Assembly (NCBI GenBank): GCA_002189035.1
Contig: NEEC01000009.1
Span: 3,389,941 to 3,453,940 of the forward strand
From: Utricularia gibba
Taxonomy: Eukaryota; Plantae; Magnoliophyta
Length of the DNA: 64,000 nucleotides
Direction: 5' to 3'
Part shown: one piece after another, positions 6,101 through 58,944 of the stretch
How positions within the stretch are numbered: position 1 is the first letter of the stretch
How the letters are laid out: each line of letters starts with the position of its first letter
Translations under genes and position numbers: made by a program
The notes under the pieces: generated by a model
Seen by the model: the letters and a program-made list of their open reading frames with translations, nothing else
The model's database searches: none
Told to the model about the DNA's origin: nothing

Positions 6101-9100
6101 TGAAGCTGCTCGCTATTTAAGTATTCCCTTGCTGATGTATTTAATGACCAAATGCGCAGATTCAGGCAGCTGATAATAAAATCTAGCAAGACAGTTTGGG
6201 GATTATTAGGATCAGATCCACGGTCTTCTTTATGGAATGAGAGAATTTTTCTGGTTGTCTCCACCTACACATCATTACGCATTTAAATCAACTCTGAATA
6301 CCTTAAAAACCTGAATATTAAATATGAAGAGACATTGTGACAAGGAAAAGAGTAATTACTTTTCGTGGGTCTGTATTCAGTGCGCTAACGACTAGTTCCA
6401 CAAGAATTATCTGAGCAAACAGCCATGTGACATGGTTGGTTCTAAGGACATTTGGAGCACCATCTTGAAGCCGAGAAACAAGCTTATCGACAAAGTCAAC
6501 GAAGTCTATGCATCCATGCTTCATGAGGAAAAAGAATAAATCCGAAAAAATAAGCCATTCCTGCCAGCAGTTCGTCTCTGTAGATTCACAAAATCATAAG
6601 CGCCTTTCCTAATAAAAATAGCCATACAGGAGCACCTAACAGCAGAATTAATGAAAACAACCATAATTCTGTGAAATTTGAGAATGAAGGACGTTTGCTT
6701 AAGTTTGTCAATTTCATTATCTCCACAATTCTGGCATGGCTGCGTCACCAATGATTTCAAAATTAAAAAAGAACCAGCATCCACCATACCACATAATTAT
6801 TGTTTAAATTGTTCTCATCATCAAAACAGACATGAGTTCGTTTAGTCTGATAAGAATGAAGAGCTTACCTGAGTTTGAAAGTTTTAGTAGTTCCACAATT
6901 CTATCGATTGTTGCATCAGTTATCATTTCTGAGGTAAAAACAGCACCAGCAGTAGGTCCTTGTGCAGGAAGCCTATGGCATGGTGCTAAAAGTAAAACCC
7001 GTCTCCACCAATCTGGTGATGGAGTGTTACAGAAAGCATGCCTCAAACATCTAAGAGCTCTTTCCCAGTCAAGGCTTTCCCGCTGAATAGATGCTGCAAG
7101 TTCCTGTAGCATGCTTTATCAGTCCTTTGCAACTCAATTCTTAATTTCTTGGATATTCAACATAGAAACCAATTATTCGAACCCACAAACAAATATTTTT
7201 GAAGATAGAGAAGCCACAGACATCCATTCTCAACTTGTTCGCATATGTAGACCATCTAACCTAAGATTCTGACAATCCTTTGCTTTGAATCACACTATTC
7301 ATGTGTAGGCTTCTGACTATCCTTTGCTTTCAGTCACACTGTCCATCTCTAGGTTTACATGAACAATATCTTGTTAAAAATTTTGAAATTTCAGAACTGC
7401 ATTAAAAAATAAAAGTAATCACTGCTTTCTTAGAAATAGAAGCTCATAGAGCTTATGTCCCTAACACCATCTGAATTACTCACAGAAAGGGCCTAACCGA
7501 ACTTTTATTTAAGAAAAAAAACCTTTCCAATCTTATCCATTAAATAAACAGCTTTATGAAGAATTATAATTACGAATCCAGAGATTCAGTATCCAAATAC
7601 CACTCCACCTCTTCAGGATATATTTGACTTCAATGTGAAGTATAGAATCGGCACATAGGGGCGATATCATTACCTCTCCATGCAAAGGTTCCCCCAGCAA
7701 ACTAGGGTATGTGATAGGTGAATGCCGCATATTAATGACGGTTTCACCAGGTGTGTTGCCAGTGGCCTGAGGCTGAATTCTGGAAGTGCCAAAAGTCGGA
7801 CAGTGAAGGTGTTGATCCAGCATTTGCATATGCATCGCCATCATATCTCTTCTCTTGTGGATTTCAAGAAGAAGCGTAAAAAGTGCCTCATCATCTGGTA
7901 TGTTCTCAATAAATTGCAGGCCACTACGTATCAATTCATAAAATGGCACACGACATTTAGTCTCCTCCACTAACTGCCAAATTACATCCAAACAGTTATG
8001 CACCCATTCCAGCAGTGTAACATCAGGCATCCAACATTTTGCACTATCAAACTCATCGACTCCATGCTGTTTTTGATCCCAATGGCCAAGCCAATTCAAC
8101 ATGTGATTTAGAATATCAGCATGGGTCACTGGCTTTAAATTAGTGCGCAATCCTATCAAGATTATCTTACAGGACAATTTTCGTAGGCAACTAAGAGTAT
8201 TTTCTCTTACAGACGAGTTGATCCTTGCTGACTGCTGGACCATGACGGTGGTGTCATTAGACTTCAAGGGTGACAACGGAGTGCAAGAAGATGGCTCCGC
8301 TGCTGAGTGTGCAGGTGATCCAACACCATGCATTGCATTCAAGGGAGGAGAAGCAGGAGTTGATGACTGGAAACTGATAGAATTTGGAAGGGGATTTGAG
8401 GGTTGCAGGCCTGACTGCGAAGAAGTTGAAGATACAACAGCTGCAGCTCTTTGGCAGCCCTGAAAAAGGGGGATTCTGCTGAAGAAACTGATGAAAGAAG
8501 TGCTGTTAAGAATGTGTCCCAGTTAATGCACCCTCTACTGCACAAGGCGCTTACTGCAAAGAGCAAAAAATCAGCTCTAGGAGCATGAGTACAGAACTGG
8601 AGCACCAGAGATATGAGAATGGATTCTGTTACGGAACACAGTAACTCCTGGTCCTGGTTAGAATATATCATGAAATATGTAAGTAAGTACACGATCTCCA
8701 TGAAACATGTTCTTAAAGTAAGAAAAAAAAAAGCCTCAAATTGAAGTCTGCTCTTAAAACCTTACAGGAAACTCTCTCCGTATCTGCTCAAAGTCCAGAA
8801 GAAATCGTTCATTGGGTGGAGGAAACTCTTTGCTAATAGCAGTAACTCTCTTCTGTGCCTTGTTCCTGCAGTTTACTAGGCTTAAAAAATCATGCTTATA
8901 AATTAAAAAAAAAACAGAATGCAGCAGTCTTTCCAGGAAAATATTTGCCTCTAGTAAAAAAAAAGATAGGCATGGTATTAAGGAATTACGACTCACGGGG
9001 GTTCCCGAACTTGTTCGTCCGGTTTCTGCCAGGCATTTCTCTGCGAAATTGAATCGCCATAAGGAATATTAATTGAGGAATAGAAGCCGACAAGCTTAGG

Positions 9101-9829: not shown

Positions 9830-12382
9830 TCAAGGGTGGGCGGAGAAGTAAGCGAGTAGCCCAACCAAGGGAGCGTTTATGTACGTGGTGGGTTCAGATT
9901 CCTGGAACAATGGCCTGGAATCAGGAAATGCGTCCGACGTATTCGGTCCACCCACCACCGCTCCCACCAACACATTCGGGTTCGGATTCTGGGTCAAGTA
10001 GTAACCCGTCCCATCTTTGCACCCTATGCGAGCCGGATGGGCTGCCACAGACGGCAACGAGCTACCCCGGTGGTGGATCCGGAGCGGGAACCTCTCCCCG
10101 TACCCCACCATGTACGACATTCTCATGGGGTTGTCTCCTAGAATGTAGTCCACCTGATGATGTCCACCGCACAGATCAACCCACCTCCGGCCTCAGTTGT
10201 GTTGAACAAGAGCACGTATGTATACATACCTGACGGCGAGCCAAGGTTTTGAGGACGGAGGAGGTGGCCGGAGTACGCCCACAAGGGACGCGGTGGTTGG
10301 CATGGCTGAGATAGTTGGAGTAAGCGAGCACCAGGAAGGACAGCGACGTGACGTGCTGCATGTTGCTCCCCCCTGCCTTGAACATCAGTCCTCCTGCGCA
10401 CCCCACACAGCAATAATTAATTCAAATGATGATGATCCCATCCCAATAATAAGGATACTGTCTGCCTAGGTATTTAATGCACGATGCCATTCACAAGGTG
10501 CTCCAGTCAGTTCCCTACAGTTGAAGCATTCATGGTGATTTGACAATGAACACTGTCCCTTCATGACTACTCACTGGTTGGATGCAGTAAACCGTAAGCC
10601 TTTTTTGTAGTGGGTTAAGCCAAATGAAATGGCACCTGGGGAGTATTGAACTTGAGGAGGATGAAAGTTTCCAGGCAACAGGGAACAGATGAAGGCATCT
10701 GCATTCAACTGGAAAGACCTCAGATCCTCAGCTCTGCCCATCAGGACCTCCTGTTTTTATGGAAATTGTAATACGTGTAGTCAGCCTTCTTAATCAGCCA
10801 TTGATGGACGATTAGGACATGCACACACACCACCATCAACGGAACGTTAGCAGTTAGTAAATGGGACTGACAAGATTAGAGAATCCCATTTCCTCCGAAA
10901 CCCAGAATGGGGCATTTAATGAAAAGCCCGGCGGCACATGGAGAGAGGAAGACCGAGGATGATGAAATCCGGCAATGGAGATGGCCAAAACTAGCAAGAT
11001 TGAATGAATTCACACACACTACGTACCTTGGAAAGGAGGACATTAATGCCTGCGTGTTTGTTGTCCCACCCGAACTCATTAATTGTATCTCCAGCCCTCA
11101 AAACCACCTCATTTCCTACGATATACTCTCTGAATTCTCGCCTCCTAGATGCCTTGTGCAGCCATGCCGCTGCCCAGAGTAGCTCGTCCTGCAAACGCCA
11201 TTTTTAAACACGAGTGAAATTCCTAAATTTTCTTCTGCAACCTCCGATGTGTGATTGGAGCGGTACCTGGTAGCCATTCACATCGCAGTAAAAAGGGCAA
11301 ACAGCTTGACTTAGGCTGGAGCTGTAAGCACCTCGGTGTCTATCAGCGAAGTCGAACACCTTATGCATCAAGAAGACACGGTGCAAAGCCATGAAAAATA
11401 AACACAATCAGAGTAGAAAAAAGAATGAAGGGTGCAGAAGATGCTTGTATCATTTTCAGAAAATGTAACACGACGCGGCAATGTGCGCCAATGTCAAAGA
11501 AAAAGGACGGCTCAACGCGGCGGCCGTCTACGAGATCTTTTCGAGATACTACCCAAAAGCCGAAAAAGGGAACGAATACGGTGGAATCATAAAGTTGTCC
11601 GCCTCTGCCCATAAATCACGTGAAGGCTATACCCAAGTCTTTGCAACTAAAGTAGGCAAAAGAAAAAGAAAATTCCTTCGGTATGAGCGGCTTACTTTAA
11701 CGGCACGACTGAGTAGTAGTTTTGAGTAAGCCGGGTTTCGTGACCGGAAAACGATGGATGCGGCTGCGAGGGCGGCGGCGGTTTCCCCTGCGACGTCGGA
11801 CCCTGGGTTCTCGCGATCGATTTTGTAAGCTGTTCTTAATGTGTCCATGTCTTCAGGCCTCTCCCAGCAGCTGTGGTCCGACAATGGGTCCCCGACTTGC
11901 ACGTAGATAACGCCGTCGTGTGCGGTGGCTTTTAGCAAATAATCGGTAGCCCATTTCACTGCTGTCACTGCGTTCCCGAGTTCACTTCCCATGTTCCTTC
12001 CGAAGTCGATAATGCTCCACGACAACAATGTGGCTGTAAACGCCATGGGGAATCCGAATTTCACGTTGTCCCCTGCATCGTAGTACCCTCCGCTCAAATC
12101 CACCTAACCCAGGAAAAATCTCAGATACTGGACTATGAAATCAGAAAAAGAAGGGAAAAAAAGTCAAAGAAGCCCTACACCGTCTGAGGCTCCGTCGTGC
12201 AAGGCGGAATCTCTCCGCCAGCGAATGCGCTGGTCAGGGGGAAGCCTCCCAGAGCGTTGGCCTTCGAAGAAGATAATGCTCTTACGGAGAGCATCGTGGT
12301 AGTCATGGCGGGAGGTCACGGCGTTTCCGGCGAGGATCAAAATGAAGGCGACGGCCAATGGGAGGGAGGAGTTTGGCGCCAT
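9830..12382 (-). CDS. Secreted endo-1,4-beta-glucanase, glycoside hydrolase family 9 (class B), 7 exons
   Basis: Signal peptide [21 protein letters not shown]9 motifs: [84 protein letters not shown] junctions keep frame. Confidence 0.95.
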
Positions 12383-17835: not shown

Positions 17836-18362
17836 ATGCCTGATTTCCATCTCCAAGACATGGAGCAATTGAAGAGTTCGAAAAATCGCAGGTCCCCAAA
17901 AGCACCCTCAAAGCCGGTAGCCTGCTGCGTTGTAACCGGATTTTCTATAACAACGTTAGTCTCATGTTACATTTTGAATGTCACCTTAAAGATGATGCTT
18001 TCACTCCCAAGTATTTGTCTTTGGGTTTGGTTCCTTCTTCTCGCTCTACTGCAGAGATCAGTGGTGCAGCATGCACATCAGCAAGCCCAAAAACAGCTCT
18101 CACTATGACCCAATTGGATTCTTTGGAAACTCGAATCAACTTCTCAGATGCTCGATCTTCTTTGCTGCGGAAAGCTGTCAAGAGCCTCACTTGTGGACCG
18201 CCCTCTGCGTCGTTCGCATCATCCACCAATGAGTTTACGGAGAAAAAGGGAGGGAAATCTCAATCCAAGAAGGTGAAAAAGGCCATCCCTGATATAATTA
18301 TACTTGCTGACGATGATGAAGGTGGTGGTGTTGCTAAGATAGATCTAAGCTTGAAGCTTTGA
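17836..18362 (+). CDS. Single C2H2 zinc-finger protein with C-terminal EAR-like motif (DLSLKL); -1 frameshift at ~17925
   Basis: Adding one C (GCC TGC CTG CGT TGT) joins ORF 17836 to ORF 17964 and yields C-x2-C-x12-H-x3-H (CLRCNRIFYNNVSLMLHFECH). The protein ends IDLSLKL*. Probable 5'UTR intron ~17493-17812. Confidence 0.75.
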
Positions 18363-20596: not shown

Positions 20597-22076
<1,480 letters not shown>

Positions 22077-22576: not shown

Positions 22577-25500
22577 TCAAGTTTGCCTGGTCGAGACATC
22601 GTACCTCGTTGAAACACGAGAAATGGGCTCGCGGAAGTACTGCAGCGAAATGAAGATCGCTTCCTGATCTCAAAAAAAACTGAACGTCAGACCACCAGCA
22701 GCATTCAACTGGCGAGGTAAAGGAGAAACACTAGTTACCTCCGTCCTGATAGTTCTGCTACCTTGATGAGGGCATGTGTTCAGATAAGAGTGAAACACAT
22801 CGTTCACAGTTCTACCCTGCATTCATTGACACCGCCATACAAGGGTCAGGTTGGGCATCAAGATTCAGTCCTTATCGTCTTTGATGAAGAGGTGCACCAT
22901 GCTGGTGAAAGTAATACAATACCTGCAAGTCACTATCTTCTTCAACACACTCTTCCAACCCCGCAAGCCCACCGAAAGCAATTAAAAGATGCCTAGGGTA
23001 TTTGCAGTGACATGTTATTAGATGAGAGCCTGACGATACTAACGAATAGTCATCTGATGCTACGCACAGTGATTACACGTATGCTTAGCGTGAACCACAC
23101 CCGGAGCAACCAGTTTGTTTGGGTGTAGAACAAGAATTCCAGGACTAAAGGAGGGCTTCCAGAGCAATGAGAAGGGGATGAATGGATTGATCACAATATA
23201 CGCACCTAGTCATCTATGACATGCATGTACCTGAATGTCGGCAGCAAAAGCTCTGAAGAGTTGATAACCGACCCGTGCTCAGAAGTACCGATAGTGTGAT
23301 CATATCCTCCCTGTAAGGGCCAGTAACTCTGGATTAACTTCTGCATTTTCTCTCGCGAAATCCCTCAAAGGTGCAAGAAATGATACAGACCTCGTATGGA
23401 CAATTCCTTAGAACCGAACTGAGATTTGGAGCATATCGAACTCGGTATCCCCAGTAAATTCCCTCTTCCATAGGCTTGGTACGACTGACATGTTTACGCG
23501 GTCCTGTCTCTCAAATGTTATACACAAAATAAGCCCCTCTCTTGGATGATGCATATGAACAACAGCTTAAAGACCTGTATTCAGATCACGGTCTGTTCCC
23601 ATCTCTACAGTCACTCTCTTTCCTGGTTCGAGAACTTCATCAATGGTAACATTCTGTATGGTAAAAGGATGCCAAATCAAGCTAGCAATCAATGAGATGT
23701 TTAATAGTTCCCCATCGGTTATATGATAAAGGTTCTTTGTCTCATGCCATGCCTCAAGATTAATTTTAATTTAACGCACAAATCCTTTCTGTGATTAATA
23801 AGAATGTAAACATACCCATACAATCCAAAAAAAAAAAAAACTTTACGATCATGAATGACAACTTATGTTAAAATTCACTCCAAAAGTAGCTGTATAAATG
23901 TTTCCGATTAACAGTAAAGAAATAGACCACAGCAAGAAATCAAAAGTACAAGTAGCAGCTCCAAGAAAGTTTCCAATGTGGATAAACACCGTACCTTACT
24001 GAGACCTACGTCTACAAGCATTCCAGTGATACCTTGGGCTGCTTTTTCCAGTGTGACACCTGGAAAAAAAGGAAGATGCCGCCAAATTTCATCAGCATAG
24101 AATAGATGAATGATGAAAAACCTGAACAACATAACCATACATCATAGATGAATTCCAATAACAATTTTTGCAGGTTTCTTTCCACAGATAAAAATGACTC
24201 TAGAAAGAGAGTTCTTTAATATGAGTCACCATGCTAACAAGCATATGAGATCAAGGAAAAGCAGCATACTCAATCTCTCAAATGTTGAAACACAACAAAA
24301 AATGATGGCATCTGGATTGTTTTTCAGTCTTAGGATACTTGCTATCATTTATAACAAACATTAATAATGATTCATTGTAGGAACTGCCCAAGTTAATGAT
24401 TTTGACCTCCATAGATATCACTAAGAAGCTCATTGTGGCACTTCTTATGGATGCAACCAAGCTGAGTGATGAAGGATTGTCACGGGCATCAGAAAACAAA
24501 TAATCCACATAAAACTTACCTGAAGTTCAGCGATCAAGTGTAAGCCATCATTTGCCCAGACTTCTCCAAATTTATCGTAGCAATAAATGGAGGACATTGA
24601 AAACATGATTTGGGTTGGTAACGACAGTTTCCATTTTCAAAATATGAGGCATCAACAACGAAGATAAATTTATATGAGAAATTTATATTTCAGATTACCC
24701 TTAAACAATTTAAACCCTCCAATCGATATAAACAGCTCCATACACATTAAATAAGCAGAGAAATAATTTCAGAGGCCTGAAATGCTACTCTACCTTCCCT
24801 GTATGGAGACCATTCGTGCTTGCGCAGATGATGTGGGGCATCCAATGGAGGCAACATACCCTGCATCGAGAATATGAAAGGAGATTTGACGAAGCATGAT
24901 CACAAACAAAACTAGAAATAACATGATCTCTGTGGGATTCATGTACTTGCCACAAATCTCAAGCTTTTGTGCTTTGGGAATAGGCTCCTCCTCAGATACT
25001 GCGGCGTTTCAAGATACCTCAATATTCTATAAAGAAAAGCAGTACCGCTTTCATCCTCAATAGGATTACCATCTGATACTGTCAATGAGGAATCCTCTGG
25101 TGTACTCTTACTATCAAACACAACGACCTGATTGAGAAAGTTGGAAGTAAAAGCTGCCAATTGTTTAATTAAAAAAATTATGAAACCAAGAAGAAATCAT
25201 ACGAGAAAATGAAATACAAACCGTGGCATTGCATACAAATTGCCTTCAGATTAGGCATGTAATACAATGTCAGCACAAGCCATTATTTCTGTAAACAAAA
25301 CACACCTAGGTATGTGAACAATGAAAGGGCGGAACAAACACTACTACTAAATGCCTCCTCCCAACACGTATGGAAAAAAGATAAGCTTCAAACCACGTGA
25401 ATCATAAAGAGGTTGCCGTACTAATCAAGTCAACTGACGTCACTAATGTTAGAGACTGTTTTTTTCAGGTTTTTTTTCCTCATTTCACCCGACAATAAAA

Positions 25501-30960: not shown

Positions 30961-32755
30961 ATGGGAAGAAGCCTGAGCCCAGCATTGCGTCAGGAGTTGG
31001 AAAATCTCGATAGAGATGGCGATAGCAGGAAATCAGCCATCAAGGCATTGAAATCATATGTAAAGGATTTGGACACCACGGCAATACCTATCTTTCTTGC
31101 CAAAGTTTCTGAAACCAGACAAGCTGGTCTGTCGTCAGGCGAGCATACTGTTTCACTCTATGAGGTCCTTGCTAGAGTCCATGGGGCAAAGATCGTGCCT
31201 CAGATAGACAATATTATGAGTTCCATTGTGAAAACCTTGTCTTCAAGTGCTGGGTCTTTTCCTCTTCACCAGGCTTGCTCAAAAGTTGTTCCAGCTATTG
31301 CTAGGTATGCAATTGATCCATCAACACCCGGTGATAGGAAGACAAGCATCATTCGCAGTCTGTGTAAGCCTCTTTCGGACAGTCTATTGGCAAGCCAGGA
31401 GAATCTATCTTCAGGAGCCGCGCTTTGTCTGCAGGCGCTAGTGGAATCTGATAATTGGCGTTTTGCTTCAAATGATCTGACAAATGAAGTTTGCCAGAGA
31501 GTGGCGGCTGCTTTGGAGAAGCATTCTCAGGCCAATTCCTGTATGGCTTTAGTCACAGCTTTGGCTAAGCACAACAGTCTGATTGTTGAAGCTTATTCTA
31601 GACTGCTAATTAGAGCTGGCCTGAGAATTCTTGAAGCTGGTACGAGTGAAGGAAATTCCCAGAAACAGTTTTCAGCGATACACATGGTGAGCTCTCTCAT
31701 GAGGTTTCTTGACCCGAGAAGTATATGCTCCGAACTTGAGCTGGTTATAAGGGAAATGGAGAAGTGCCAGGCTCATCGCATGCCATTTGTTACAGGTGCC
31801 GCTTTTGAAGCTTTGCAAATAGCTAAAAAAATATATCCAGGAAATGGTACGAAAATAAGCACGGTCGAAGAGTTGTCCTTCACTGCATCACCTGAGTCTC
31901 ATACTGTTGATTCGTTTATCCGAAGCGAGTTCTCTGCTGTTTCACCAAATTCAGTAAATCAGGGCCATCCCAACTTGGTATCTAGTAGCAGAACCATGAA
32001 TCGTCGTAGACTTTGGCGAAATTGTCGCGGTGGTCTCATGGACATCAATCGTGAGGATGCTATATTATCAGATATGACTGGCAGAAGTGGCCTCACTTGC
32101 TCTGACTACGACGATGAATGTCACGGCCATAGAGATTACCCTGAAAGTTTTGCAGGTTCCGATGATGGAAGTACCAAAACTCCTTGTCAAAATGTATGCC
32201 TTTCTAGCTTTTCTGAGATATTCTGATTACACTCATCTCATAATACATCTGTCATTCATTTTTCAGCATTCTAATTCTCACATTAAAGTTGAAGATGTGA
32301 AGATATTCAGCACCCCAAGAAGGCTCATCCGCTCACTGCAAGATGTGGATGATTCCAACTCGAGCGCCTCCAGCAAGAGAACTCGAAAAATCTGGAAAAT
32401 TAATGGGATACCAAAACCAATGCTTGATAAAAATTGTTTGTTTTACCCTGAAGATGCAGGAGAACCTGATCTTGATCAAGATTGTCTCTTTTACACTGAA
32501 GACGGGATGGCGCCTCACAGCTCAGAATCTGTTTCTTCTACCGATAACGTGGCTGTCAATGGAAAAGATCACAGTTTGTCTTCTGGGTTGGGTTACACAA
32601 GCGAAATGCAACTAGAAAGAGTTGCTTTTGAAAGGAACCACTTCAAAGCCAAATGGAGGTTGGTTTGTGGTTTCGTTGTATTCCTATTTGCTGGGCTTAT
32701 GTGTCTCCTTGCAAACAATGATGTCAAGGATGGCCGCATTCTCACCCCAACATAG
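30961..32755 (+). CDS. SINE1: SUN-interacting nuclear envelope protein (ARM repeats plus KASH tail), 2 exons (intron 32194-32266)
   Basis: MGRSLSPALRQELENLDRDGDSRKSAIKALKSYVKDLD...SAGSFPLHQACSKVVPAIARY matches recalled SINE1. C-terminal TM segment followed by a short tail ending ILTPT*, a plant KASH pattern. Confidence 0.88.
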
Positions 32756-40597: not shown

Positions 40598-42879
40598 ATG
40601 TTGATGTCTAGATTATGGAACAAGCTTTATAATTTAAGATCTGGGGCAGGAAAGTCGGTCTTCCAATGGGAGATGAACGTCCAATTTGTCGGCCATGATG
40701 GAGAAGCTCGCCGTGGTCTGCACGTCCTGTAAGCCGAACCTTTTACTGTTATGAGATTTTAGTGGTTTCTTCTGCTGGTTTAGATGAGGCGTTTTTGTTG
40801 TATGCCTGCAACACGCCAACTGATATCCCAGCTTCTCGACTTCCGCATGTTCCTTAAACTGTTTCTAGTGTTTTCTGATTACAAAGTTTGTATTGGATTG
40901 TGCCTGGTGGTGCTATTTCCTGTGTTGTTGATGCTATTTAACGTGTTAAATACTGTCCATTTTTTCTTGATGTCACTTACCAGTACATTAAAATAGGATC
41001 GCGCTATTAGAATGTTTTCTGTGTAGTAAGGATATGGCCAAGGAGGCAGCTTCCTTAGATGCCAACACGAGGAGGGGATCTCTCTCCAATGAACTTAGTA
41101 GTCCCCCAAAAAGGACAGCGGATGCAAAAGATAAGGTTATGCTGAAGTTTGTGATTCTGTACTGTAACTTAGCAGTATTGAGAACGGGTTCTTTCTAAAA
41201 GTTCATTTGCGGATTGCCTTGCAGCGTTAAAAGAAAAGATCCATTTCATACGGCTGTACATCTATATTCTCCATGCATTGCACTTGCTTTGCAAAAACAT
41301 TTCAAGCAATCCATTTCCGGCTCTCCCTTAAGAGACTTATTGTCTCTTGATCCTCAGGTGTGGGATTTTACTCCAGGATTTGTAAAGATAGTAGAAGTTG
41401 GCCCAAGAGATGGCCTTCAAAATGAGAAAGAGATCGTACCAACTTCCGTGAAAGTCAAGTTGATAGAGATGCTTGTTTCTTCTGGGTTACCTGTTGTGGA
41501 GGCTACTAGCTTTGTCTCACCTAAGTGGATTCCTCAGGTGCTGGTAACGTGTTTCCACAAATTAAAAATGGGAAGCCTGAGGCCCTGTTTCTTCTCCATT
41601 AAAAATCGTTCTTGTTAGCTAATCCGTCTAGTAATCATCAATTCTTTATGGCTAGCTTTTTGTTCCATATTTTTGTTGTGATCTTGGGACTTGGGCAGTA
41701 TTTACATCTGAATGGTGTTAATGTGTTGCACACCGTATCTTAGTTGGTCTCTCGCGTTGTATATCATGTGTTATTCATTGCTTTTGGATTTACTTAGTCG
41801 TGTTGTTCATGCAACACTTTACAATTGCAGCTAGCTGATGCAAGTGAAGTAATGTTAGGTATTAAGAACATTCAGAATTCCAGGTTCCCAGTTTTGACTC
41901 CAAATCTCAAAGTAGGCCGCTGAGTGCTAGTGAATGTTTCTTTTACCAACCACTAAATTTCCCTGTACTCGTTGTAGGGTTTTGAGGCCGCTGTTGCAGC
42001 TGGGGCCAAAGAAGTGGCTATTTTTGCTGCAGCGTCTGAGTCCTTTTCCAAATCAAACTTAAATTGCAGCATTGGAGATAGTTTGGCTCGGTATCGGGAC
42101 ATCACCACTGCTGCAAACAGCCACTCGATCCCTGTTCGTGGGTATGTCATATTGGCTTCGTTGGCCTGACCTTTACTCATTGAGCGATATATGACCGGAA
42201 AATGCGCTTTCTAATTCCTCATCAGATATGTCTCATGTGTTGTTGGCTGCCCTGTGGAAGGGTATGTATCGCCATCCAAGGTAGCAGATGTTGCAGGAAA
42301 GCTCTATGATATGGGTTGTGTTGAAATATCCCTTGGTGATACAATTGGTGTCGGGACTCCCGGTATTCCTTGCATTTGACCATGCAGACTGAAATCTTTC
42401 AATCAGTAAGCCTTGGGATTTTTTTTTCCAGGTGAAGTAGGTAGGATGCTGGATTACGTGCTTTCTGTCGTGCCTGTTGACAACGTTGCAGTTCATTTTC
42501 ACGACACTTATGGGCAAGCTCTTTCCAACATCCTTTTTTCCCTTCAAGTGAGTTTAAAATTGCTACTCACTGCTTTCAAATGCAGCTTGATTTAGGTTTT
42601 TGTTTGGTCCTACCTTTTGCTGTAAAATTGTGTTTGTGACAGAGGGGCATCCGCGTGATAGACTCCTCTGTGTCCGGACTTGGCGGTTGCCCATACGCGA
42701 AAGGCGCCTCGGGAAACGTTGCCACAGAAGACGTAGTCTACATGCTGAAGGGGATGGGGTTTGAAACAAATGTGGATCTGAAGAGGGTTATTGCGGCTGG
42801 AGAGTATATATGCAGGCACTTGGGCCGGCCCTCCGGGTCCAAGACGGCAACTGCTTATCTGGCCAAACACTCGTCGTAG
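40598..42879 (+). CDS. HMGCL: Hydroxymethylglutaryl-CoA lyase, mitochondrial
   Basis: [88 protein letters not shown]. First exons ([16 protein letters not shown]..., presequence-like) inferred from splice sites and frame. Confidence 0.9.
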
Positions 42880-43827: not shown

Positions 43828-44092
43828 TCATCTTCTTCTGTTGTGGAGAGGATTGGACCGGCGTAAACTGTCCTCTTGTCTGCTCCAAAAACTTGCTCTT
43901 CTTCTTCCCTGGACCTGGAATAATCACTTCCACAATGTCGGAGCCTGGCGCCTAATCCGGAGGAAGAGATTTTTCGTTCAACTTTGGGGAACTGCTCTTA
44001 CTCAGCAACGGATGACCCATCTCCGAGACCACCAAACATAACGCGACAAGAAAAAGAAAACCCCCAATCATAAACTTTCTCACCCGAATCAT
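43828..44092 (-). CDS. CLE (CLAVATA3/ESR-related) peptide precursor, CLE16/17/19/21/22-like; two -1 frameshifts
   Basis: Signal peptide MIRVRKFMIGGFLFLVALCLVVSE. Adding one base near 43970 and one A at 43853 gives an 88-aa precursor ending EEEEQVFGADK-RTVYAGPNPLHN-RRR*. Not in the supplied ORF track. Confidence 0.8.
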
Positions 44093-44939
44093 TCAGTTAC
44101 TCAGCCAGAAGGGACTACTCACATTTGTCTCAGCTCACCAGAAGAATCTCCCTCTCCTGCTTGTGCTGGATATATGTGTCCCCGGGGAGTTTGAATGCGC
44201 GGAATCAGAAATGAATTATTATTTGATGAAAGAAACTTGCTGCTGCTGTTGCCATATTTTCTTTTTCCGGGCTGGCAGAACCGCAGAGCCGAATGAGGGA
44301 GCAAATGAAATGAAATGCTGGAAGGCTGGCTGCTCTTCCTTTCCTAATACATGCAATGCAATGAAACGAAACCACTCCTGCTCTGGCTCTCCATCTCTCT
44401 CGTATTTAAATCCTTCGTGGGAATCAGTGAGAATTTTCATAATGCTCATAAAATCTGACAACTGCGTAAGGTTTTTTAAAGATGTAGTAAATGGGGATAG
44501 GCATTTCGTAGTAATACGATCACTAATTACCTACTGGTTTTTGTCCCGAGAAGCAAAGGGAAACAGTTACCCTCATATTTTCCAAAGCCATGCATATACG
44601 ACACACGTAATCTTTTTCATAAAAAAAGGCACCCAAAATCTCAACTCTTATAATTTGTCTGCGTTGTGTGTCAAGAGGGTGAAGAAATCGAGGTCGAGGC
44701 ACTCGAGTTGTCGATTGTTCAGTCCAGTCCCTTGCGTTGAACAATGTCTCAGGCTCCGCTCCGCAAGGGGTGGAAATGCGATTTGTTCCTTCTTCATATC
44801 ATCAATAGGAAAAGAACATCTACAAAAGCAGTATGCATTTCAAATTCGCGAATCGTGCACAAAGTATACTTAATCTTCGCACACGCAGTATAACATTTGA
44901 TTCGAGGGGTTGTGCTCACTCAAGGAATAGCTGTAGTGC

Positions 44940-47136: not shown

Positions 47137-48000
47137 TTAACATTGAAAAGGCCAGTGAGAGTAATTGGAGAAGTCCTCCTCCAGATGAGAATGTGATTCC
47201 ACTGTTGTATTGGTGCTCGAAGCAGAGCCAGGTGAACGAAACGGCCACAAGAAAGACCACCTTCTTCGCCTGCTCCTGTTTTGCTCCATTGAGTTGTTTC
47301 GTGTATCGTTGCCATCTGTTAGCTGCTGGTCTGTTAGCTCACGGCGACAAATCGGGCATGATCTCTGCTGCTCCAGCCAAGGCACAATGCAATCTGAATG
47401 GTATAAATGCTTACATGGGAGCTTTCTTGCTTGAGACCCCAGGTCAAAAAGGTCCTTGCAAACAGCACACATTGTGTCAGCACGAACGTGCTTCTTAGAA
47501 ATTTTGATGGTGGGCAATGCACGGATCAAGGATATTGAAGCAGGGGGTGGCACACGCTGATCATTAGTGACATGCTCAAAAAACTCTTCCACCCCTGGTC
47601 CAATGAAATAATCTCCCCCATTATCTCGCCTGAATCCAAGGCTTTCGTTGAGAAACTCCAGGAGTCCACCAGATCCAGGCATTCTTACAGGCATATCTCC
47701 GCTAAAAACCAAGTAAGAATCCCAAGAGTGACCGTTTTGCGTAGATATCCTGTTGGCATCAGATGCATCATTTCTAACAGCCACATGCTGCCTGAGAAAA
47801 TTAGACACAGTTTGCATGAACCTCGGTCTCTGGGTCAGCTCTTCGGCACTCATTGTATCATTCATGCTAAATGCATGGTCTAGTTCTTGAACAAAGCCTC
47901 CTCCACAGTTTGAGCACTCTGCTACATATCGCCTCCAGAGGGTTACGGGCTCCCCACAGTTATAGCACCAATGAGTAGTACCTCCGGCGGTCGTAGACAT
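47137..48000 (-). CDS. RING-H2 E3 ubiquitin ligase with N-terminal zinc ribbon, RZF1-like
   Basis: HWCYNC...CSNCGGGFVQEL, GDYFIGPGVEEFFE, PPPAS...ALPTIKI, CAVCKD...LPCKHLYHSDCIVPWL....CPICR, WSFLWPFRS, HWPF. Single exon. Confidence 0.9.
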   Translation of the reverse strand: MSTTAGGTTHWCYNCGEPVTLWRRYVAECSNCGGGFVQELDHAFSMNDTMSAEELTQRPRFMQTVSNFLRQHVAVRNDASDANRISTQNGHSWDSYLVFSGDMPVRMPGSGGLLEFLNESLGFRRDNGGDYFIGPGVEEFFEHVTNDQRVPPPASISLIRALPTIKISKKHVRADTMCAVCKDLFDLGSQARKLPCKHLYHSDCIVPWLEQQRSCPICRRELTDQQLTDGNDTRNNSMEQNRSRRRRWSFLWPFRSPGSASSTNTTVESHSHLEEDFSNYSHWPFQC

Positions 48001-49086
48001 CTGAGATCTCTTTATTCTAATCACGAGATAGCAGAACAAGCAAGCTGAATTTTGTCACCGTGGAAGGCATCCTGTTGATGGTTTGAACAAGTGAGTGATA
48101 ACAACAAATATCAAGTCTTTGAAGCTCCTAAGTTTTGTTTTCAGGGCTTTCACTTGTACGCAAAAACAAGAGTTAAAACCCCCACTGAAAATCCACAGCA
48201 GCGGAGAGAATCATATGATGCTATGTTGCTCAAATTACAAATAACATGAAGCTGCACTGCAAATCAAAACTGGCTCAATAAAAAAACAAGGGGATTGGAA
48301 AAACAGCGAAAGACTAATGAAAAAAAAGGCATGGGATGCCGGCCATTGTAAATCTAGGTAGAAAAGAGAAAACAATAGCGCATTTGGATGGATAGACGAG
48401 ACCAAGGAACAACATCGCAGGATCCGAAAATTCTAATAAGACCCAAAATTTTTAAAAGCATAGCAAAAACAAAAAGAAAAAAAATGACAATCATCATCCA
48501 GCGTAGATTAGCCCAGGGGCGAAATGCGGCTAAAGATCCATCCAGCAAGAGGGAAGGAGTAGGGTAATCAAGGTATGAATCAGAAAAGAGAAGAGCTAAC
48601 CTTTGCACAGCGAAGCGGAAGAAAGGCCCCGATTGATGGGGTTACTTAGAAACAGAATGACTAGTTGAGCATGTATAAAGACAGAGTAACAGGGAAAAGC
48701 AGGCATCTTTTTAGGAATGGGAGCTAAAACATCTACGCAAGTACGTGTCTATCTGGCAATCTGTCACTTGCGGGATTGGGCTTGTATTCAACCAAGTCTG
48801 AAATTTTCTTCAATATTTGTGTGAAAGCCATCATCTGAATGGAAAATTTCCTGTCAAATGTGATCAATTTGCCAATCCATTTCATCATTCCGATCAAACC
48901 CTCGGCTTTAACGAAAGCTTCTTATTAAAACCCCCAATAAACTAGACCGAGCCACCGTTAGTCTCCACAGATTACCAAGTTTTACTACATCCTTGTTCAT
49001 AAATTTCTCATTCATTTGACACAACGACAGCATCACGGATGCATGATGCAGCACTACCATCCTGAGATAGGTCCCGCAGGCACTCG

Positions 49087-55815: not shown

Positions 55816-56463
55816 ATAGAGGGGCATCTTTGAGGAGCAAAAACTTGCCGTAGCCCTACTTGTATTCAAGCAACGGCCCAAGGTACTAGACCTTGGTTGC
55901 CCTGGTGTATCATTTGAATGTTGAACACATGTTGATTGAATTGGCTTATTTTTGCAAGTCCGCAGGGTTCTTCCCACTTTCCCTGGGTACACTCTTCTTT
56001 ACTTTTTCAGTACCATTGTTCATACGAAATTGTTTTTGCATTTAGTCCATCTCTTCCAGGTAAACATTCTCCGCCGTGTTTTCTTAAGAACTTCAATTAG
56101 GGTCAGATGATGTTTACATTCATTTCGATAATCTTCTGTCGCAAGGTGGTCTTTGTTGGGTTCCAAAGCTCGCAACCATAATCCCCATGAGGTCAAGGAT
56201 GAGAAACATCTTGATAGATAAAACGGTCAATTGCTGGAGTAGTTGGTTGCGAATAGGAAAGCCAAGATCGCAAGTTGGGATAACATGAAAAAGCATATTC
56301 GAATTACCATTTTTTAATAGCTAACCTTTGGAACATCAGATCAGACCCCACGATCTCATTTGTAAACCTGGTATCTTTTATTTATCTAAAAAATTAATAT
56401 CAAATATAAGTGATATTTTACATAAAAGCGGGATTTTTACCTAACAAACATCGCCCGTCTCTG

Positions 56464-58944
56464 ATGTCCAAAGCCCTTCTTTCGCTCATCAAGCTGCGGA
56501 GCATTCCCAAACCACAAAGCAGGAACCCTGAAGAATTTCCTGACTATCGTTATATCAAGAGGTTCGTTACCGAAGTCTGCCAAATTCTTAGAGGCCAAGG
56601 TGAACAGTGGAAGGAAGCGCTTGAAAATCGGCTCTTTGAGGAAGAGATTGCTCCTTCGGAGATTGCCCACCTAGTGTTCGACGGAATTCGCGATCGCGAA
56701 TTAGGTCTCAAGTTTTTTGGCTTTCTTATTCAGAAAAGTTGCCTCCTTGATGGTTTTGCGTACTCTTCTCTTCTGAAGCTGCTAGCCCAGTCTAAAGTGT
56801 TTTCGGAATTAGACATTGTGTTGGCTGAGTGTTTGCAGTGTGAAGAGAAGCGTCCTAGACGTGATGCTTTGGATGCTGTGATCTGGGCATATGCAGATGC
56901 AGGATTCCTCAAGAAGGCGCTCGACGTATACTCCTTTGTATTGAAAGCTTATGATTCTGTACCTAACTTGCTGGCTTGTAATTCGTTACTAAAGGGACTC
57001 GTGAAAGATGGGAATATGAAAGCTGCATGGGATATATATGATGAGATGGTCAAAAGAGATGATGCTGGGGAGCAGAAGTGCGTGGACAACTATAGCGTGT
57101 GTATCATGGTGAAAGGATTGTGCAACGAAGGAAATGTAGAGAAAGGTAGAAGATTGATTGAGAAAAGGTGGGGTAAGCATTGCATTCCAAATATTGTATT
57201 CTATAATACTCTCATAGATGGATATTGCAAGATAGGTGATATTGATAGAGCCTTTGTGCTTCTTGAGGACTTGAAAAACCAAGGCTTCTTGCCTTCACAG
57301 CAGACTTACGGGGCACTTGTCAACGGCTTGTGCAAAAAAGGATACTTTGATAAAATTGATGAAATCATGAAAGAAATGTTATCCAGAGGTTTGGAAATAA
57401 ATTCTCAAATATATAACAATATTTTGGATGCCAGACTGAAATTTGGCTTTTGGGAGGAAGCTTTGGAGACAACGAAAAATATGACCAAGCTTGGATGCAC
57501 TCTCGACATTGTTACATATAATACGTTGATTTGTGGGCTGTGTAAGGATGGCAAGGTTCATGAAGCAGAAAACGTTTTATGTGAGTCCAGTAATGGTGGA
57601 CTGCTCCCAAATAAACTCAGCTTTACTCCTATAATACATGCATACTGCAAGATGAGAAACTTTGACAGAGCGTTGACTCTGCTGCTTGAAATGGCCAAGT
57701 GTGGTCATAAACCTGATTTAGTAACGTATTCTGTTGTTATCAATGGATTAGTTGTTGCTGGAGATGTTGATGCCGCATTATCAGTCCGAAATAAGATGAT
57801 GGAACACGGTACATATCCAGATACATGCATTTACAATATTTTGATCAACGGACTTTTCAAAAGTTCCAGGATAAGTGATGCTAAGAAGCTTATCGTGGAG
57901 ATGCTCAACAATGATGTGGAACCTGATGAATTTGTCTGTGCAACTCTAGTTGATGGCCATATAAGGCGTGGTGATTTGGCTGACGCAGAGAAGCTTTTTA
58001 ATTTGATGATTGAGAAAGGAGTCGATCCTGGGCTTGTAGGGTACAATGCCATGATCAAGGGTTATTGCAAATTAGGGAGGATAAAGGAAGCTTTTCGTTG
58101 TGTGAGAAGAATGACTAGAAGAAAAATTCCCCCAGATGAATTTACTTATTCTACCATTATCGATGGTTGCATTAAGCAGAAGAATTTGTATAGTGCATTT
58201 GGTGTGTTTAGTCATGCATTTAAATTGAACAGGAGCTCCAACGTCGTAATATATACCTGTCTGATTAATGGATTATGTCGCTCTGGAGATGTTGTGGGAG
58301 CTGTAAAAATCTTGAAAGACATGCGGTCAAATAGTATGGCACCTAATGTGGTTACATACACTATACTCATTGGGAGTTGCTGCAAAGAGGGAAAACTAGC
58401 AGAAGCATCATTGTTCTTTGAAGAAATGCTGACGAGGAAGTGCAATCCCAATGATGTGACATTTTATTATTTGGTGAATGGATTATCAAACAATATCCCC
58501 CTTGCCATCTTGAGGACACAAAGCAGATCGATGCTACTTGATATTTTTGGGACACTAATATCCCATGGTCTCCTGCCTATGTCTGCGGCATATGCTTCGA
58601 TAATCGCATCCCTTTGTTTGAAAAGAATGCTTCAAACTGCATTGCTTCTCATGGATAAGATCCTGAAAGAAGGCATTACGCTGGAATCCGTTACTTTTGG
58701 TGCATTATTGTTTGGCGTGTGTTCGGAGGGTAAATCAGAAGAATGGAGGAATATCATTTCTTCCAGAATAACTCAGATCGATGTTGATGTTGTTTTTCAG
58801 TGCTTGTACAAGTTTGAATGCTACTCGACTCCTGAAGTGGCTAAGCAGGTTTCCTTGATTCTGCGAGGCATGCTCAAGGAACGTGACTCTACAGATAACA
58901 AGATATCATTCTTGTCGAAGTATTCAGGTGTTGAAAAAGGGTAA
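56464..58944 (+). CDS. P-class pentatricopeptide repeat protein (At1g52620-like), single exon
   Basis: Tandem 35-aa repeats (PNIVFYNTLIDGYCKIG, PDLVTYSVVINGL, PGLVGYNAMIKGYCKLG, PNVVTYTILIGSCC). No E/DYW tail. Start MSKALLSLIK. Confidence 0.93.
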   Translation: MSKALLSLIKLRSIPKPQSRNPEEFPDYRYIKRFVTEVCQILRGQGEQWKEALENRLFEEEIAPSEIAHLVFDGIRDRELGLKFFGFLIQKSCLLDGFAYSSLLKLLAQSKVFSELDIVLAECLQCEEKRPRRDALDAVIWAYADAGFLKKALDVYSFVLKAYDSVPNLLACNSLLKGLVKDGNMKAAWDIYDEMVKRDDAGEQKCVDNYSVCIMVKGLCNEGNVEKGRRLIEKRWGKHCIPNIVFYNTLIDGYCKIGDIDRAFVLLEDLKNQGFLPSQQTYGALVNGLCKKGYFDKIDEIMKEMLSRGLEINSQIYNNILDARLKFGFWEEALETTKNMTKLGCTLDIVTYNTLICGLCKDGKVHEAENVLCESSNGGLLPNKLSFTPIIHAYCKMRNFDRALTLLLEMAKCGHKPDLVTYSVVINGLVVAGDVDAALSVRNKMMEHGTYPDTCIYNILINGLFKSSRISDAKKLIVEMLNNDVEPDEFVCATLVDGHIRRGDLADAEKLFNLMIEKGVDPGLVGYNAMIKGYCKLGRIKEAFRCVRRMTRRKIPPDEFTYSTIIDGCIKQKNLYSAFGVFSHAFKLNRSSNVVIYTCLINGLCRSGDVVGAVKILKDMRSNSMAPNVVTYTILIGSCCKEGKLAEASLFFEEMLTRKCNPNDVTFYYLVNGLSNNIPLAILRTQSRSMLLDIFGTLISHGLLPMSAAYASIIASLCLKRMLQTALLLMDKILKEGITLESVTFGALLFGVCSEGKSEEWRNIISSRITQIDVDVVFQCLYKFECYSTPEVAKQVSLILRGMLKERDSTDNKISFLSKYSGVEKG

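Follow-up and report, generated by a model that had tools for sequence, protein, structure and literature searches.

Genomic context of the locus

The window, by which we mean the whole 64-kb stretch of DNA that was analysed, carries on its minus strand, at 44092-43828, a locus that is, as far as its sequence can tell, a genuine but ordinary plant CLE gene, frame-broken as assembled. Inspection of the reading frames of the window showed the coding sequence to be split over three frames. The initial annotation had proposed a CLE signalling-peptide gene outside the open reading frame (ORF) track, and both a split CLE box and a signal-peptide-like start were recovered at this site, with the proposed coordinates and peptide correct. 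The gene was left unannotated because it is tiny and its frame is broken in the assembly. The following features surround it:

489-2225 and 7554-8701, minus strand: strings of adjacent ORFs, with a weak match to Mediator MED23 at 1848-2225
11627-12103, minus strand: exon of glycosyl hydrolase family 9 (GH9)
17836-18362, plus strand: small gene for a C2H2 zinc-finger protein whose C-terminus carries an EAR motif (IDLSLKL-stop); a one-base break interrupts the finger
20871-21955, plus strand: actin gene, of which the exon 21323-21952 aligns unbroken to residues 148-339 of pollen F-actin (6iug)
24485-24546, minus strand: full-length C/D-box snoRNA of plants, snoR101, scoring 65 bits where the gathering score is 40
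30961-32752, plus strand: SINE1 (TORTIFOLIA1/SINE1-2 N-terminal domain), as two overlapping ORFs (30961-32226 and 32087-32755)
41214-41618, plus strand: HMGL-like exon, with a match just under the Pfam cut-off
47137-48039, minus strand: RING-H2 protein that bears a zinc ribbon at its N-terminus
56410-58944, plus strand: intact 844-aa PPR protein

The plant genes of the window, namely snoR101, PPR, RING-H2/zinc-ribbon, actin, SINE1, the GH9 exon and the MED23 fragment, establish a plant context. An exon upstream in the actin gene matched positions 29-150 of the actin profile. The adjacent minus-strand ORFs at 489-2225 and 7554-8701 probably form one large multi-exon MED23 gene. An ORF junction of the MED23 region, near 8340, falls in a Ser/Pro-rich stretch and represents either an intron or a one-base gap.

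The overlap of the two SINE1 ORFs was considered as a frameshift or assembly error and rejected, since a normal intron of 73 nt (32194-32266) joins them. The best relatives of SINE1 were Lamiales proteins (64-71% identity), including those of Sesamum, Striga, Rehmannia, Handroanthus and Erythranthe at 64-69% and that of Genlisea aurea, which was the highest at 71%; Sesamum, Striga and Genlisea together span 66-71%. On these comparisons, the window is Lamiales (Lentibulariaceae-like) nuclear genome. A CLE mimic of nematode or fungal origin was likewise rejected, the gene being the plant's own.

Reading frames of the CLE locus

The elements of the locus, all on the minus strand, are listed below in the direction of reading:

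44403-44410: TTTAAATA, candidate promoter element, 318 nt 5' of the ATG, noted in the initial annotation
44170-44174: TATAT, candidate core-promoter element, 82 nt 5' of the ATG, picked out by eye only
44002-44092: exon 1 or 5' coding part, with Met, the basic n-region MIRVRK, the hydrophobic core MIGGFLFLVALCLVV and a likely cleavage site after VVS (residue 23)
43952-44001: frame-switch segment, either a 50-nt GT-AG intron or coding sequence with one base missing, weighed by base composition
43855-43951: variable region with the acidic stretch SREEEEQ, then K-R-T-V-Y-A-G-P, which holds the first seven box residues (Arg1 codon at 43874-43872)
43853-43856: one-base break inside the CLE box at a CC/AA junction, located by codon reading
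43828-43854: last five box residues NPLHN, the tail RRR and the stop TGA, in frame 2

Frame 1 opens at the ATG (44092-44090), which has an in-frame TGA directly 5', reads MIRVRKFMIGGFLFLVALCLVVSEMGHPLLSKSSSPKLNEKSLPPD and ends at the TAG of 43954-43952. Frame 3, which is open from 43996 onwards, gives ...SGLGARLRHCGSDYSRSREEEEQVFGADKRTVYAGP, the box end being also written as ...GLGARLRHCGSDYSRSREEEEQVFGADKRTVYAGP, with the Pro codon CCA at 43856-43854; past the box, the assembled sequence continues in this frame as ILSTTEEDEL... up to a TGA at 43736-43734. Frame 2 supplies NPLHNRRR, beginning with AAT (43854-43852) and closing with the TGA at 43830-43828.

KRTVYAGP in frame 3 is followed by NPLHNRRR-stop in frame 2, with an offset of one base. 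Because the two halves of the box lie in these frames one base apart, exactly one base is missing at the junction of GGTCC and AATCC (43855/43854). The lesion inside the CLE box had been placed at 43853 in the initial annotation, which is essentially right, and the acidic stretch described there is the SREEEEQ of the frame 3 variable region. Any base inserted before A43854 restores Pro-Asn, while after A43854 an inserted A gives Asn and an inserted G gives Asp; Asn and Asp both belong to the usual residues of CLE peptides. The TATA-like TTTAAATA is present where it had been reported, and is no better a promoter candidate than the TATAT at -82.

Features of the CLE family

The N-terminus is signal-peptide-like, with an n-region of charge +3, a 15-residue core of mean Kyte-Doolittle hydropathy 2.89 (residues 8-22) and small residues at -3/-1 (VVS/E). 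Only one of the 794 open ATG starts in the window combined so hydrophobic a core with a basic n-region, and this was the ATG of the CLE locus; the best signal-peptide-like start of the window thus lies 220 nt 5' of the split CLE box on the same strand, in agreement with the signal peptide originally described. The joined reading was obtained by local translation from the window coordinates and was used for product length and stop position only. The resulting precursor is small, at 71 aa under an intron model or 88 aa with two missing bases, and CLE precursors range from about 60 to 150 aa with a poorly conserved middle. R1, G6, P7, P9, H11 and N12 follow in order in a single C-terminal box, only if one base is bridged at 43855/43854. 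A Lys precedes Arg1, as K/R does in most poplar entries, and RRR and then TGA follow Asn12, so that the stop is three codons past the box. The signal peptide, the small size, the single C-terminal K-RxxxxGPNPLHN box and the short basic tail before the stop agree with the CLE assignment that had been made. Taken together, the locus is very probably a CLE family gene, alive or recently dead.

The part Y4-A5-GPNPLHN combines a non-Pro residue at position 4, T/A at position 5 and the GPNPLHN ending, as in the CLE16/17/22-like subgroup, a resemblance of motif only. By motif, the box would belong to the Asn8/Asn12 class without Pro4 (CLE16/17/22-like).

Searches with separate pieces of the gene returned no relatives. 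A Pfam-A scan of the three reading-frame pieces matched no family. Word-based protein searches with the 46-aa exon-1 ORF (length range 25-80 aa) and with the 71-aa frame-3 reading as assembled (39-124 aa), neither of which contains the whole box, yielded zero candidates, and the protein collection therefore holds no independent intact copy of the CLE gene within the lengths searched. The 0.77 scores of an ESM Atlas search, for which residues 1-32 of exon 2 served as the query, were noise.

Comparison with documented CLE peptides

The box was compared position by position with published CLE boxes in the peptide tables of Arabidopsis, poplar and tomato. Of the 12 positions of RTVYAGPNPLHN, 11 agree with documented CLE dodecapeptides, the exception being Tyr4, and each of its other residues occurs at the same position in some tabulated CLE peptide. 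Tyr at position 4 had no precedent in the Arabidopsis, poplar and tomato tables compared, and the combination of Tyr4 with Ala5 appeared in no single tabulated peptide. Position 4 nevertheless tolerates His (CLE16, CLE17) and Phe (PtCLE6) (PMC5538625, PMC4776436). The reference peptides from Arabidopsis are CLE16 RLVHTGPNPLHN, CLE17 RVVHTGPNPLHN, CLE21 RSIPTGPNPLHN and CLV3 RTVPSGPDPLHH (PMC5538625); those from poplar are PtCLE10 KRRVPAGPNPLHN (74 aa), PtCLE11 RRKIPAGPNPLHN and PtCLE6 KRKIFTGPNPLHN (88 aa) (PMC4776436); and tomato SlCLE26 is identical to CLE16, at RLVHTGPNPLHN (PMC9670457). The GPNPLHN ending, which had been described as of the CLE16/17/19/21/22 type, is indeed found in CLE16, CLE17 and CLE21, and the same list adds CLE9/10 and CLE14 (PMC5538625).

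Arabidopsis CLE16 and CLE17 share R1, V3 and G6-P7-N8-P9-L10-H11-N12 with the present box, have a ring-bearing, non-Pro side chain at position 4 and are small secreted precursors with one C-terminal box; they differ in His4 (here Tyr4), in Thr5 (here Ala5) and at position 2 (here Thr2), and the present copy is frame-broken as assembled. PtCLE10 of Populus has 11 of 13 residues in common with K-RTVYAGPNPLHN, including the preceding Lys and Ala5, and a similar precursor length, but it keeps Pro4, and two positions differ from K-RTVYAGPNPLHN. PtCLE6 resembles the present box in its aromatic residue at position 4 and departs from it in Thr5 and in Lys2-Ile3. CLV3 has the same R-T-V start and G-P-x-P-L-H core, whereas its Pro4, Asp8 and His12 set it apart from the Asn8/Asn12 class of the present box. 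The CLV3 gene has two introns.

Neither the exact dodecapeptide RTVYAGPNPLHN nor even YAGPNPLHN was found in the literature searched, and nothing specific on CLE in Utricularia was found there. It was therefore fair to suggest, as the initial annotation did, that RTVYAG may mark a ligand sequence that is new, albeit as a minor variant. On the tables compared, RTVYAGPNPLHN is a new sequence at a small step from known peptides, and would represent a somewhat atypical member of a family that is well known.

Chance expectation

The pattern [ND]P[LI]H[NH] occurred only once in the six frames of the 64 kb, and that occurrence was this box. The expected number of chance occurrences of R....GP followed by a tail of this pattern one or two bases off-frame was 2.7e-4 per window, and a split CLE box appeared in 0 of 300 Markov-simulated windows. 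A metagenome scan for DNA encoding YAGPNPLHN gave one match (L001:126-152, minus strand, contig MDTC01074021.1). It was rejected as a CLE gene, since it lies antisense within a bacterial, AT-rich gene whose product is a secreted protein of 175 aa, and it has no signal-peptide or stop context.

A mere resemblance, in which no gene exists and a fortuitous hydrophobic ORF happens to lie near a fortuitous NPLHN, draws some support from the lack of any homologue or Pfam match in the searches of separate pieces. We regard it as extremely improbable, however, given that the expectation of split boxes was calculated before a signal peptide, Lys-Arg and a nearby stop were required, and that a real chance match, that of the metagenome, looks different.

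Nature of the first frame switch

The switch from frame 1 to frame 3 within 44002-43952 is real, and it can be bridged by one added base or by excising a 50-nt GT...AG segment. This segment (44001-43952) has the donor TGA/GTAAGA, an 11-nt pyrimidine stretch TCTCTTCCTCC and the acceptor TTAG/GC, in phase 1, and it contains the runs CCCC (43989-43986), AAA (43985-43983) and AAAAA (43974-43970). Splicing joins ...HPLL-S-ARLRH... and gives the precursor of 71 aa; one base added instead, to either the CCCC or the AAAAA run for instance, gives that of 88 aa. The two single-base restorations of the initial annotation thus stand in part: the break in the box is one missing base, while the first break can also be bridged by the GT-AG segment, and its 88-aa protein is obtained if the segment is coding with a second base added, but becomes 71 aa if the segment is spliced.

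We lean slightly towards a second missing base at this switch rather than an intron. A true intron at 44001-43952, which is a sub-question compatible with the best explanation of the locus, seems to us possible at somewhat less than even odds, and it would leave only one base missing in the whole gene. The GTAAG donor, the pyrimidine stretch, the TAG/G acceptor and the correct phase all speak for splicing, and so do the introns carried by 13 of 50 poplar CLE genes according to the literature and the short introns of the lineage, with a reported median of 89 nt in Genlisea and 73 nt in the SINE1 gene of the window. However, 50 nt is far under the usual plant minimum, and tomato CLE genes seldom bear introns (PMC9670457). 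The A+T and U contents of the segment (AT 0.56, T 0.24) are no higher than those of the flanking exon 1 (AT 0.55, T 0.41), in contrast with those of the SINE1 intron, 73 nt long and proven, that the window also holds (AT 0.67, T 0.44). Moreover, dozens of in-phase GT..AG pairs are present by chance in the stretch, and both frames run open through the segment, which is Ser/Lys-rich in either reading and has the CCCC and AAAAA runs.

Origin of the break in the CLE box

Overall, the best explanation is a CLE gene from which a base was dropped by the assembly, with a probability of roughly 0.6, and we hold with moderate confidence that the break inside the box is an assembly slip rather than a mutation of the plant. 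The box flanks at the break are perfect consensus on both sides, with the diagnostic residues kept, and the rest of the box, the Lys-Arg, the tail and the stop are undecayed, which counts for an error and against a dead gene, the whole lesion amounting to one base (or two). Each of the two frame breaks has the direction expected of a single lost base and lies at or near short runs of C or A, which also counts for an error. The same kind of lesion affects the unrelated small C2H2/EAR gene of the window, where KPVAC and (L)RCNRIFYNNVSLMLHFECH...IDLSLKL-stop fall in two successive frames; the reading breaks at gcctgctg, around 17921-17928, and a base added there rebuilds the finger C-x2-C-x3-F-x5-L-x2-H-x3-H. 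This again favours error. The half finger of this gene went undetected in a Pfam search. There is also a precedent for a CLE frameshift made by assembly, namely tomato SlCLE31, in which a frameshift of the newer SL4.0 assembly proved not to be real by Sanger sequencing (PMC9670457). SlCLE31 is likewise a CLE gene passing for a pseudogene through a one-base indel in an assembly, although its case involved an inserted base and an older assembly for comparison, whereas the present locus has a missing base and a single assembly.

The competing account is that the plant itself carries the one-base deletion in the box and that the gene died recently and makes no CLE peptide, which we judge unlikely but worth weighing. 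The sequence is frameshifted as given, the break sits at runs of just two bases with no long homopolymer, and the protein searches (25-80 and 39-124 aa) found no intact copy. Larger conserved genes of the window are unbroken, including PPR (2.5 kb), SINE1 (1.8 kb), the actin exon and the RING gene; assembly errors are therefore not exceedingly frequent, and it would take bad luck for two of them to fall within 270 nt. Bladderworts are rootless. A young pseudogene is plausible, since gene loss is a known trait of this lineage. Such a death in a rootless, much simplified Lentibulariaceae plant could reflect the loss of a root-active CLE16/17-like ligand, CLE16 and CLE17 being reported to act in the differentiation of root stem cells and in the emergence of lateral roots (PMC9062579), and five CLE pseudogenes have been recognised in tomato (PMC9670457). 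As assembled, and with the 50-nt segment spliced, a dead gene would yield a 102-aa secreted protein ending ...GPILSTTEEDEL...INFV. The odds left after the assembly error and the young pseudogene fall to other readings. We consider it quite improbable that the locus is of the more far-reaching kind, that is, either a real deletion in a freshly inactivated CLE16/17-like gene, as a trace of lost root-meristem signalling, or an intact, lineage-specific Tyr4 ligand with altered receptor preference.

Proposed product and significance

Under the preferred reading, a CLE gene with a base dropped by the assembly, the transcript of the intact gene would encode ...YAGPNPLHNRRR, and a second dropped base may lie at the upstream CCCC or AAAAA run. 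The product would be a secreted prepropeptide, of 71 aa with the 50-nt segment removed by splicing and of 88 aa with the segment as coding sequence. By analogy with the family, the signal peptide would be removed on entry into the secretory pathway, a subtilase-type cleavage would occur before Arg1, after the Lys, and a carboxypeptidase would trim the RRR tail, thereby releasing a mature peptide of 12-13 residues, RTVYAGPNPLHN, in which Pro7 would be hydroxylated and possibly arabinosylated. Such a peptide would be expected to bind the LRR ectodomain of a CLV1/BAM-type receptor kinase and to restrain the proliferation of stem cells or phloem cells, and its signalling may depend on CLV2/CRN, as that of other root-active CLEs does (PMC5538625).

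Annotation routinely overlooks CLE genes, which are tiny, and an assembly error of one base can remove them from ORF tracks or give them the look of pseudogenes, as in the case of SlCLE31. In this assembly, small-gene losses should be confirmed at the level of reads before any interpretation. The Tyr4 peptide would be a modest variant that leaves the knowledge of the family unchallenged, and the locus would add one more unannotated CLE ligand to a lineage studied for its radical body-plan simplification.
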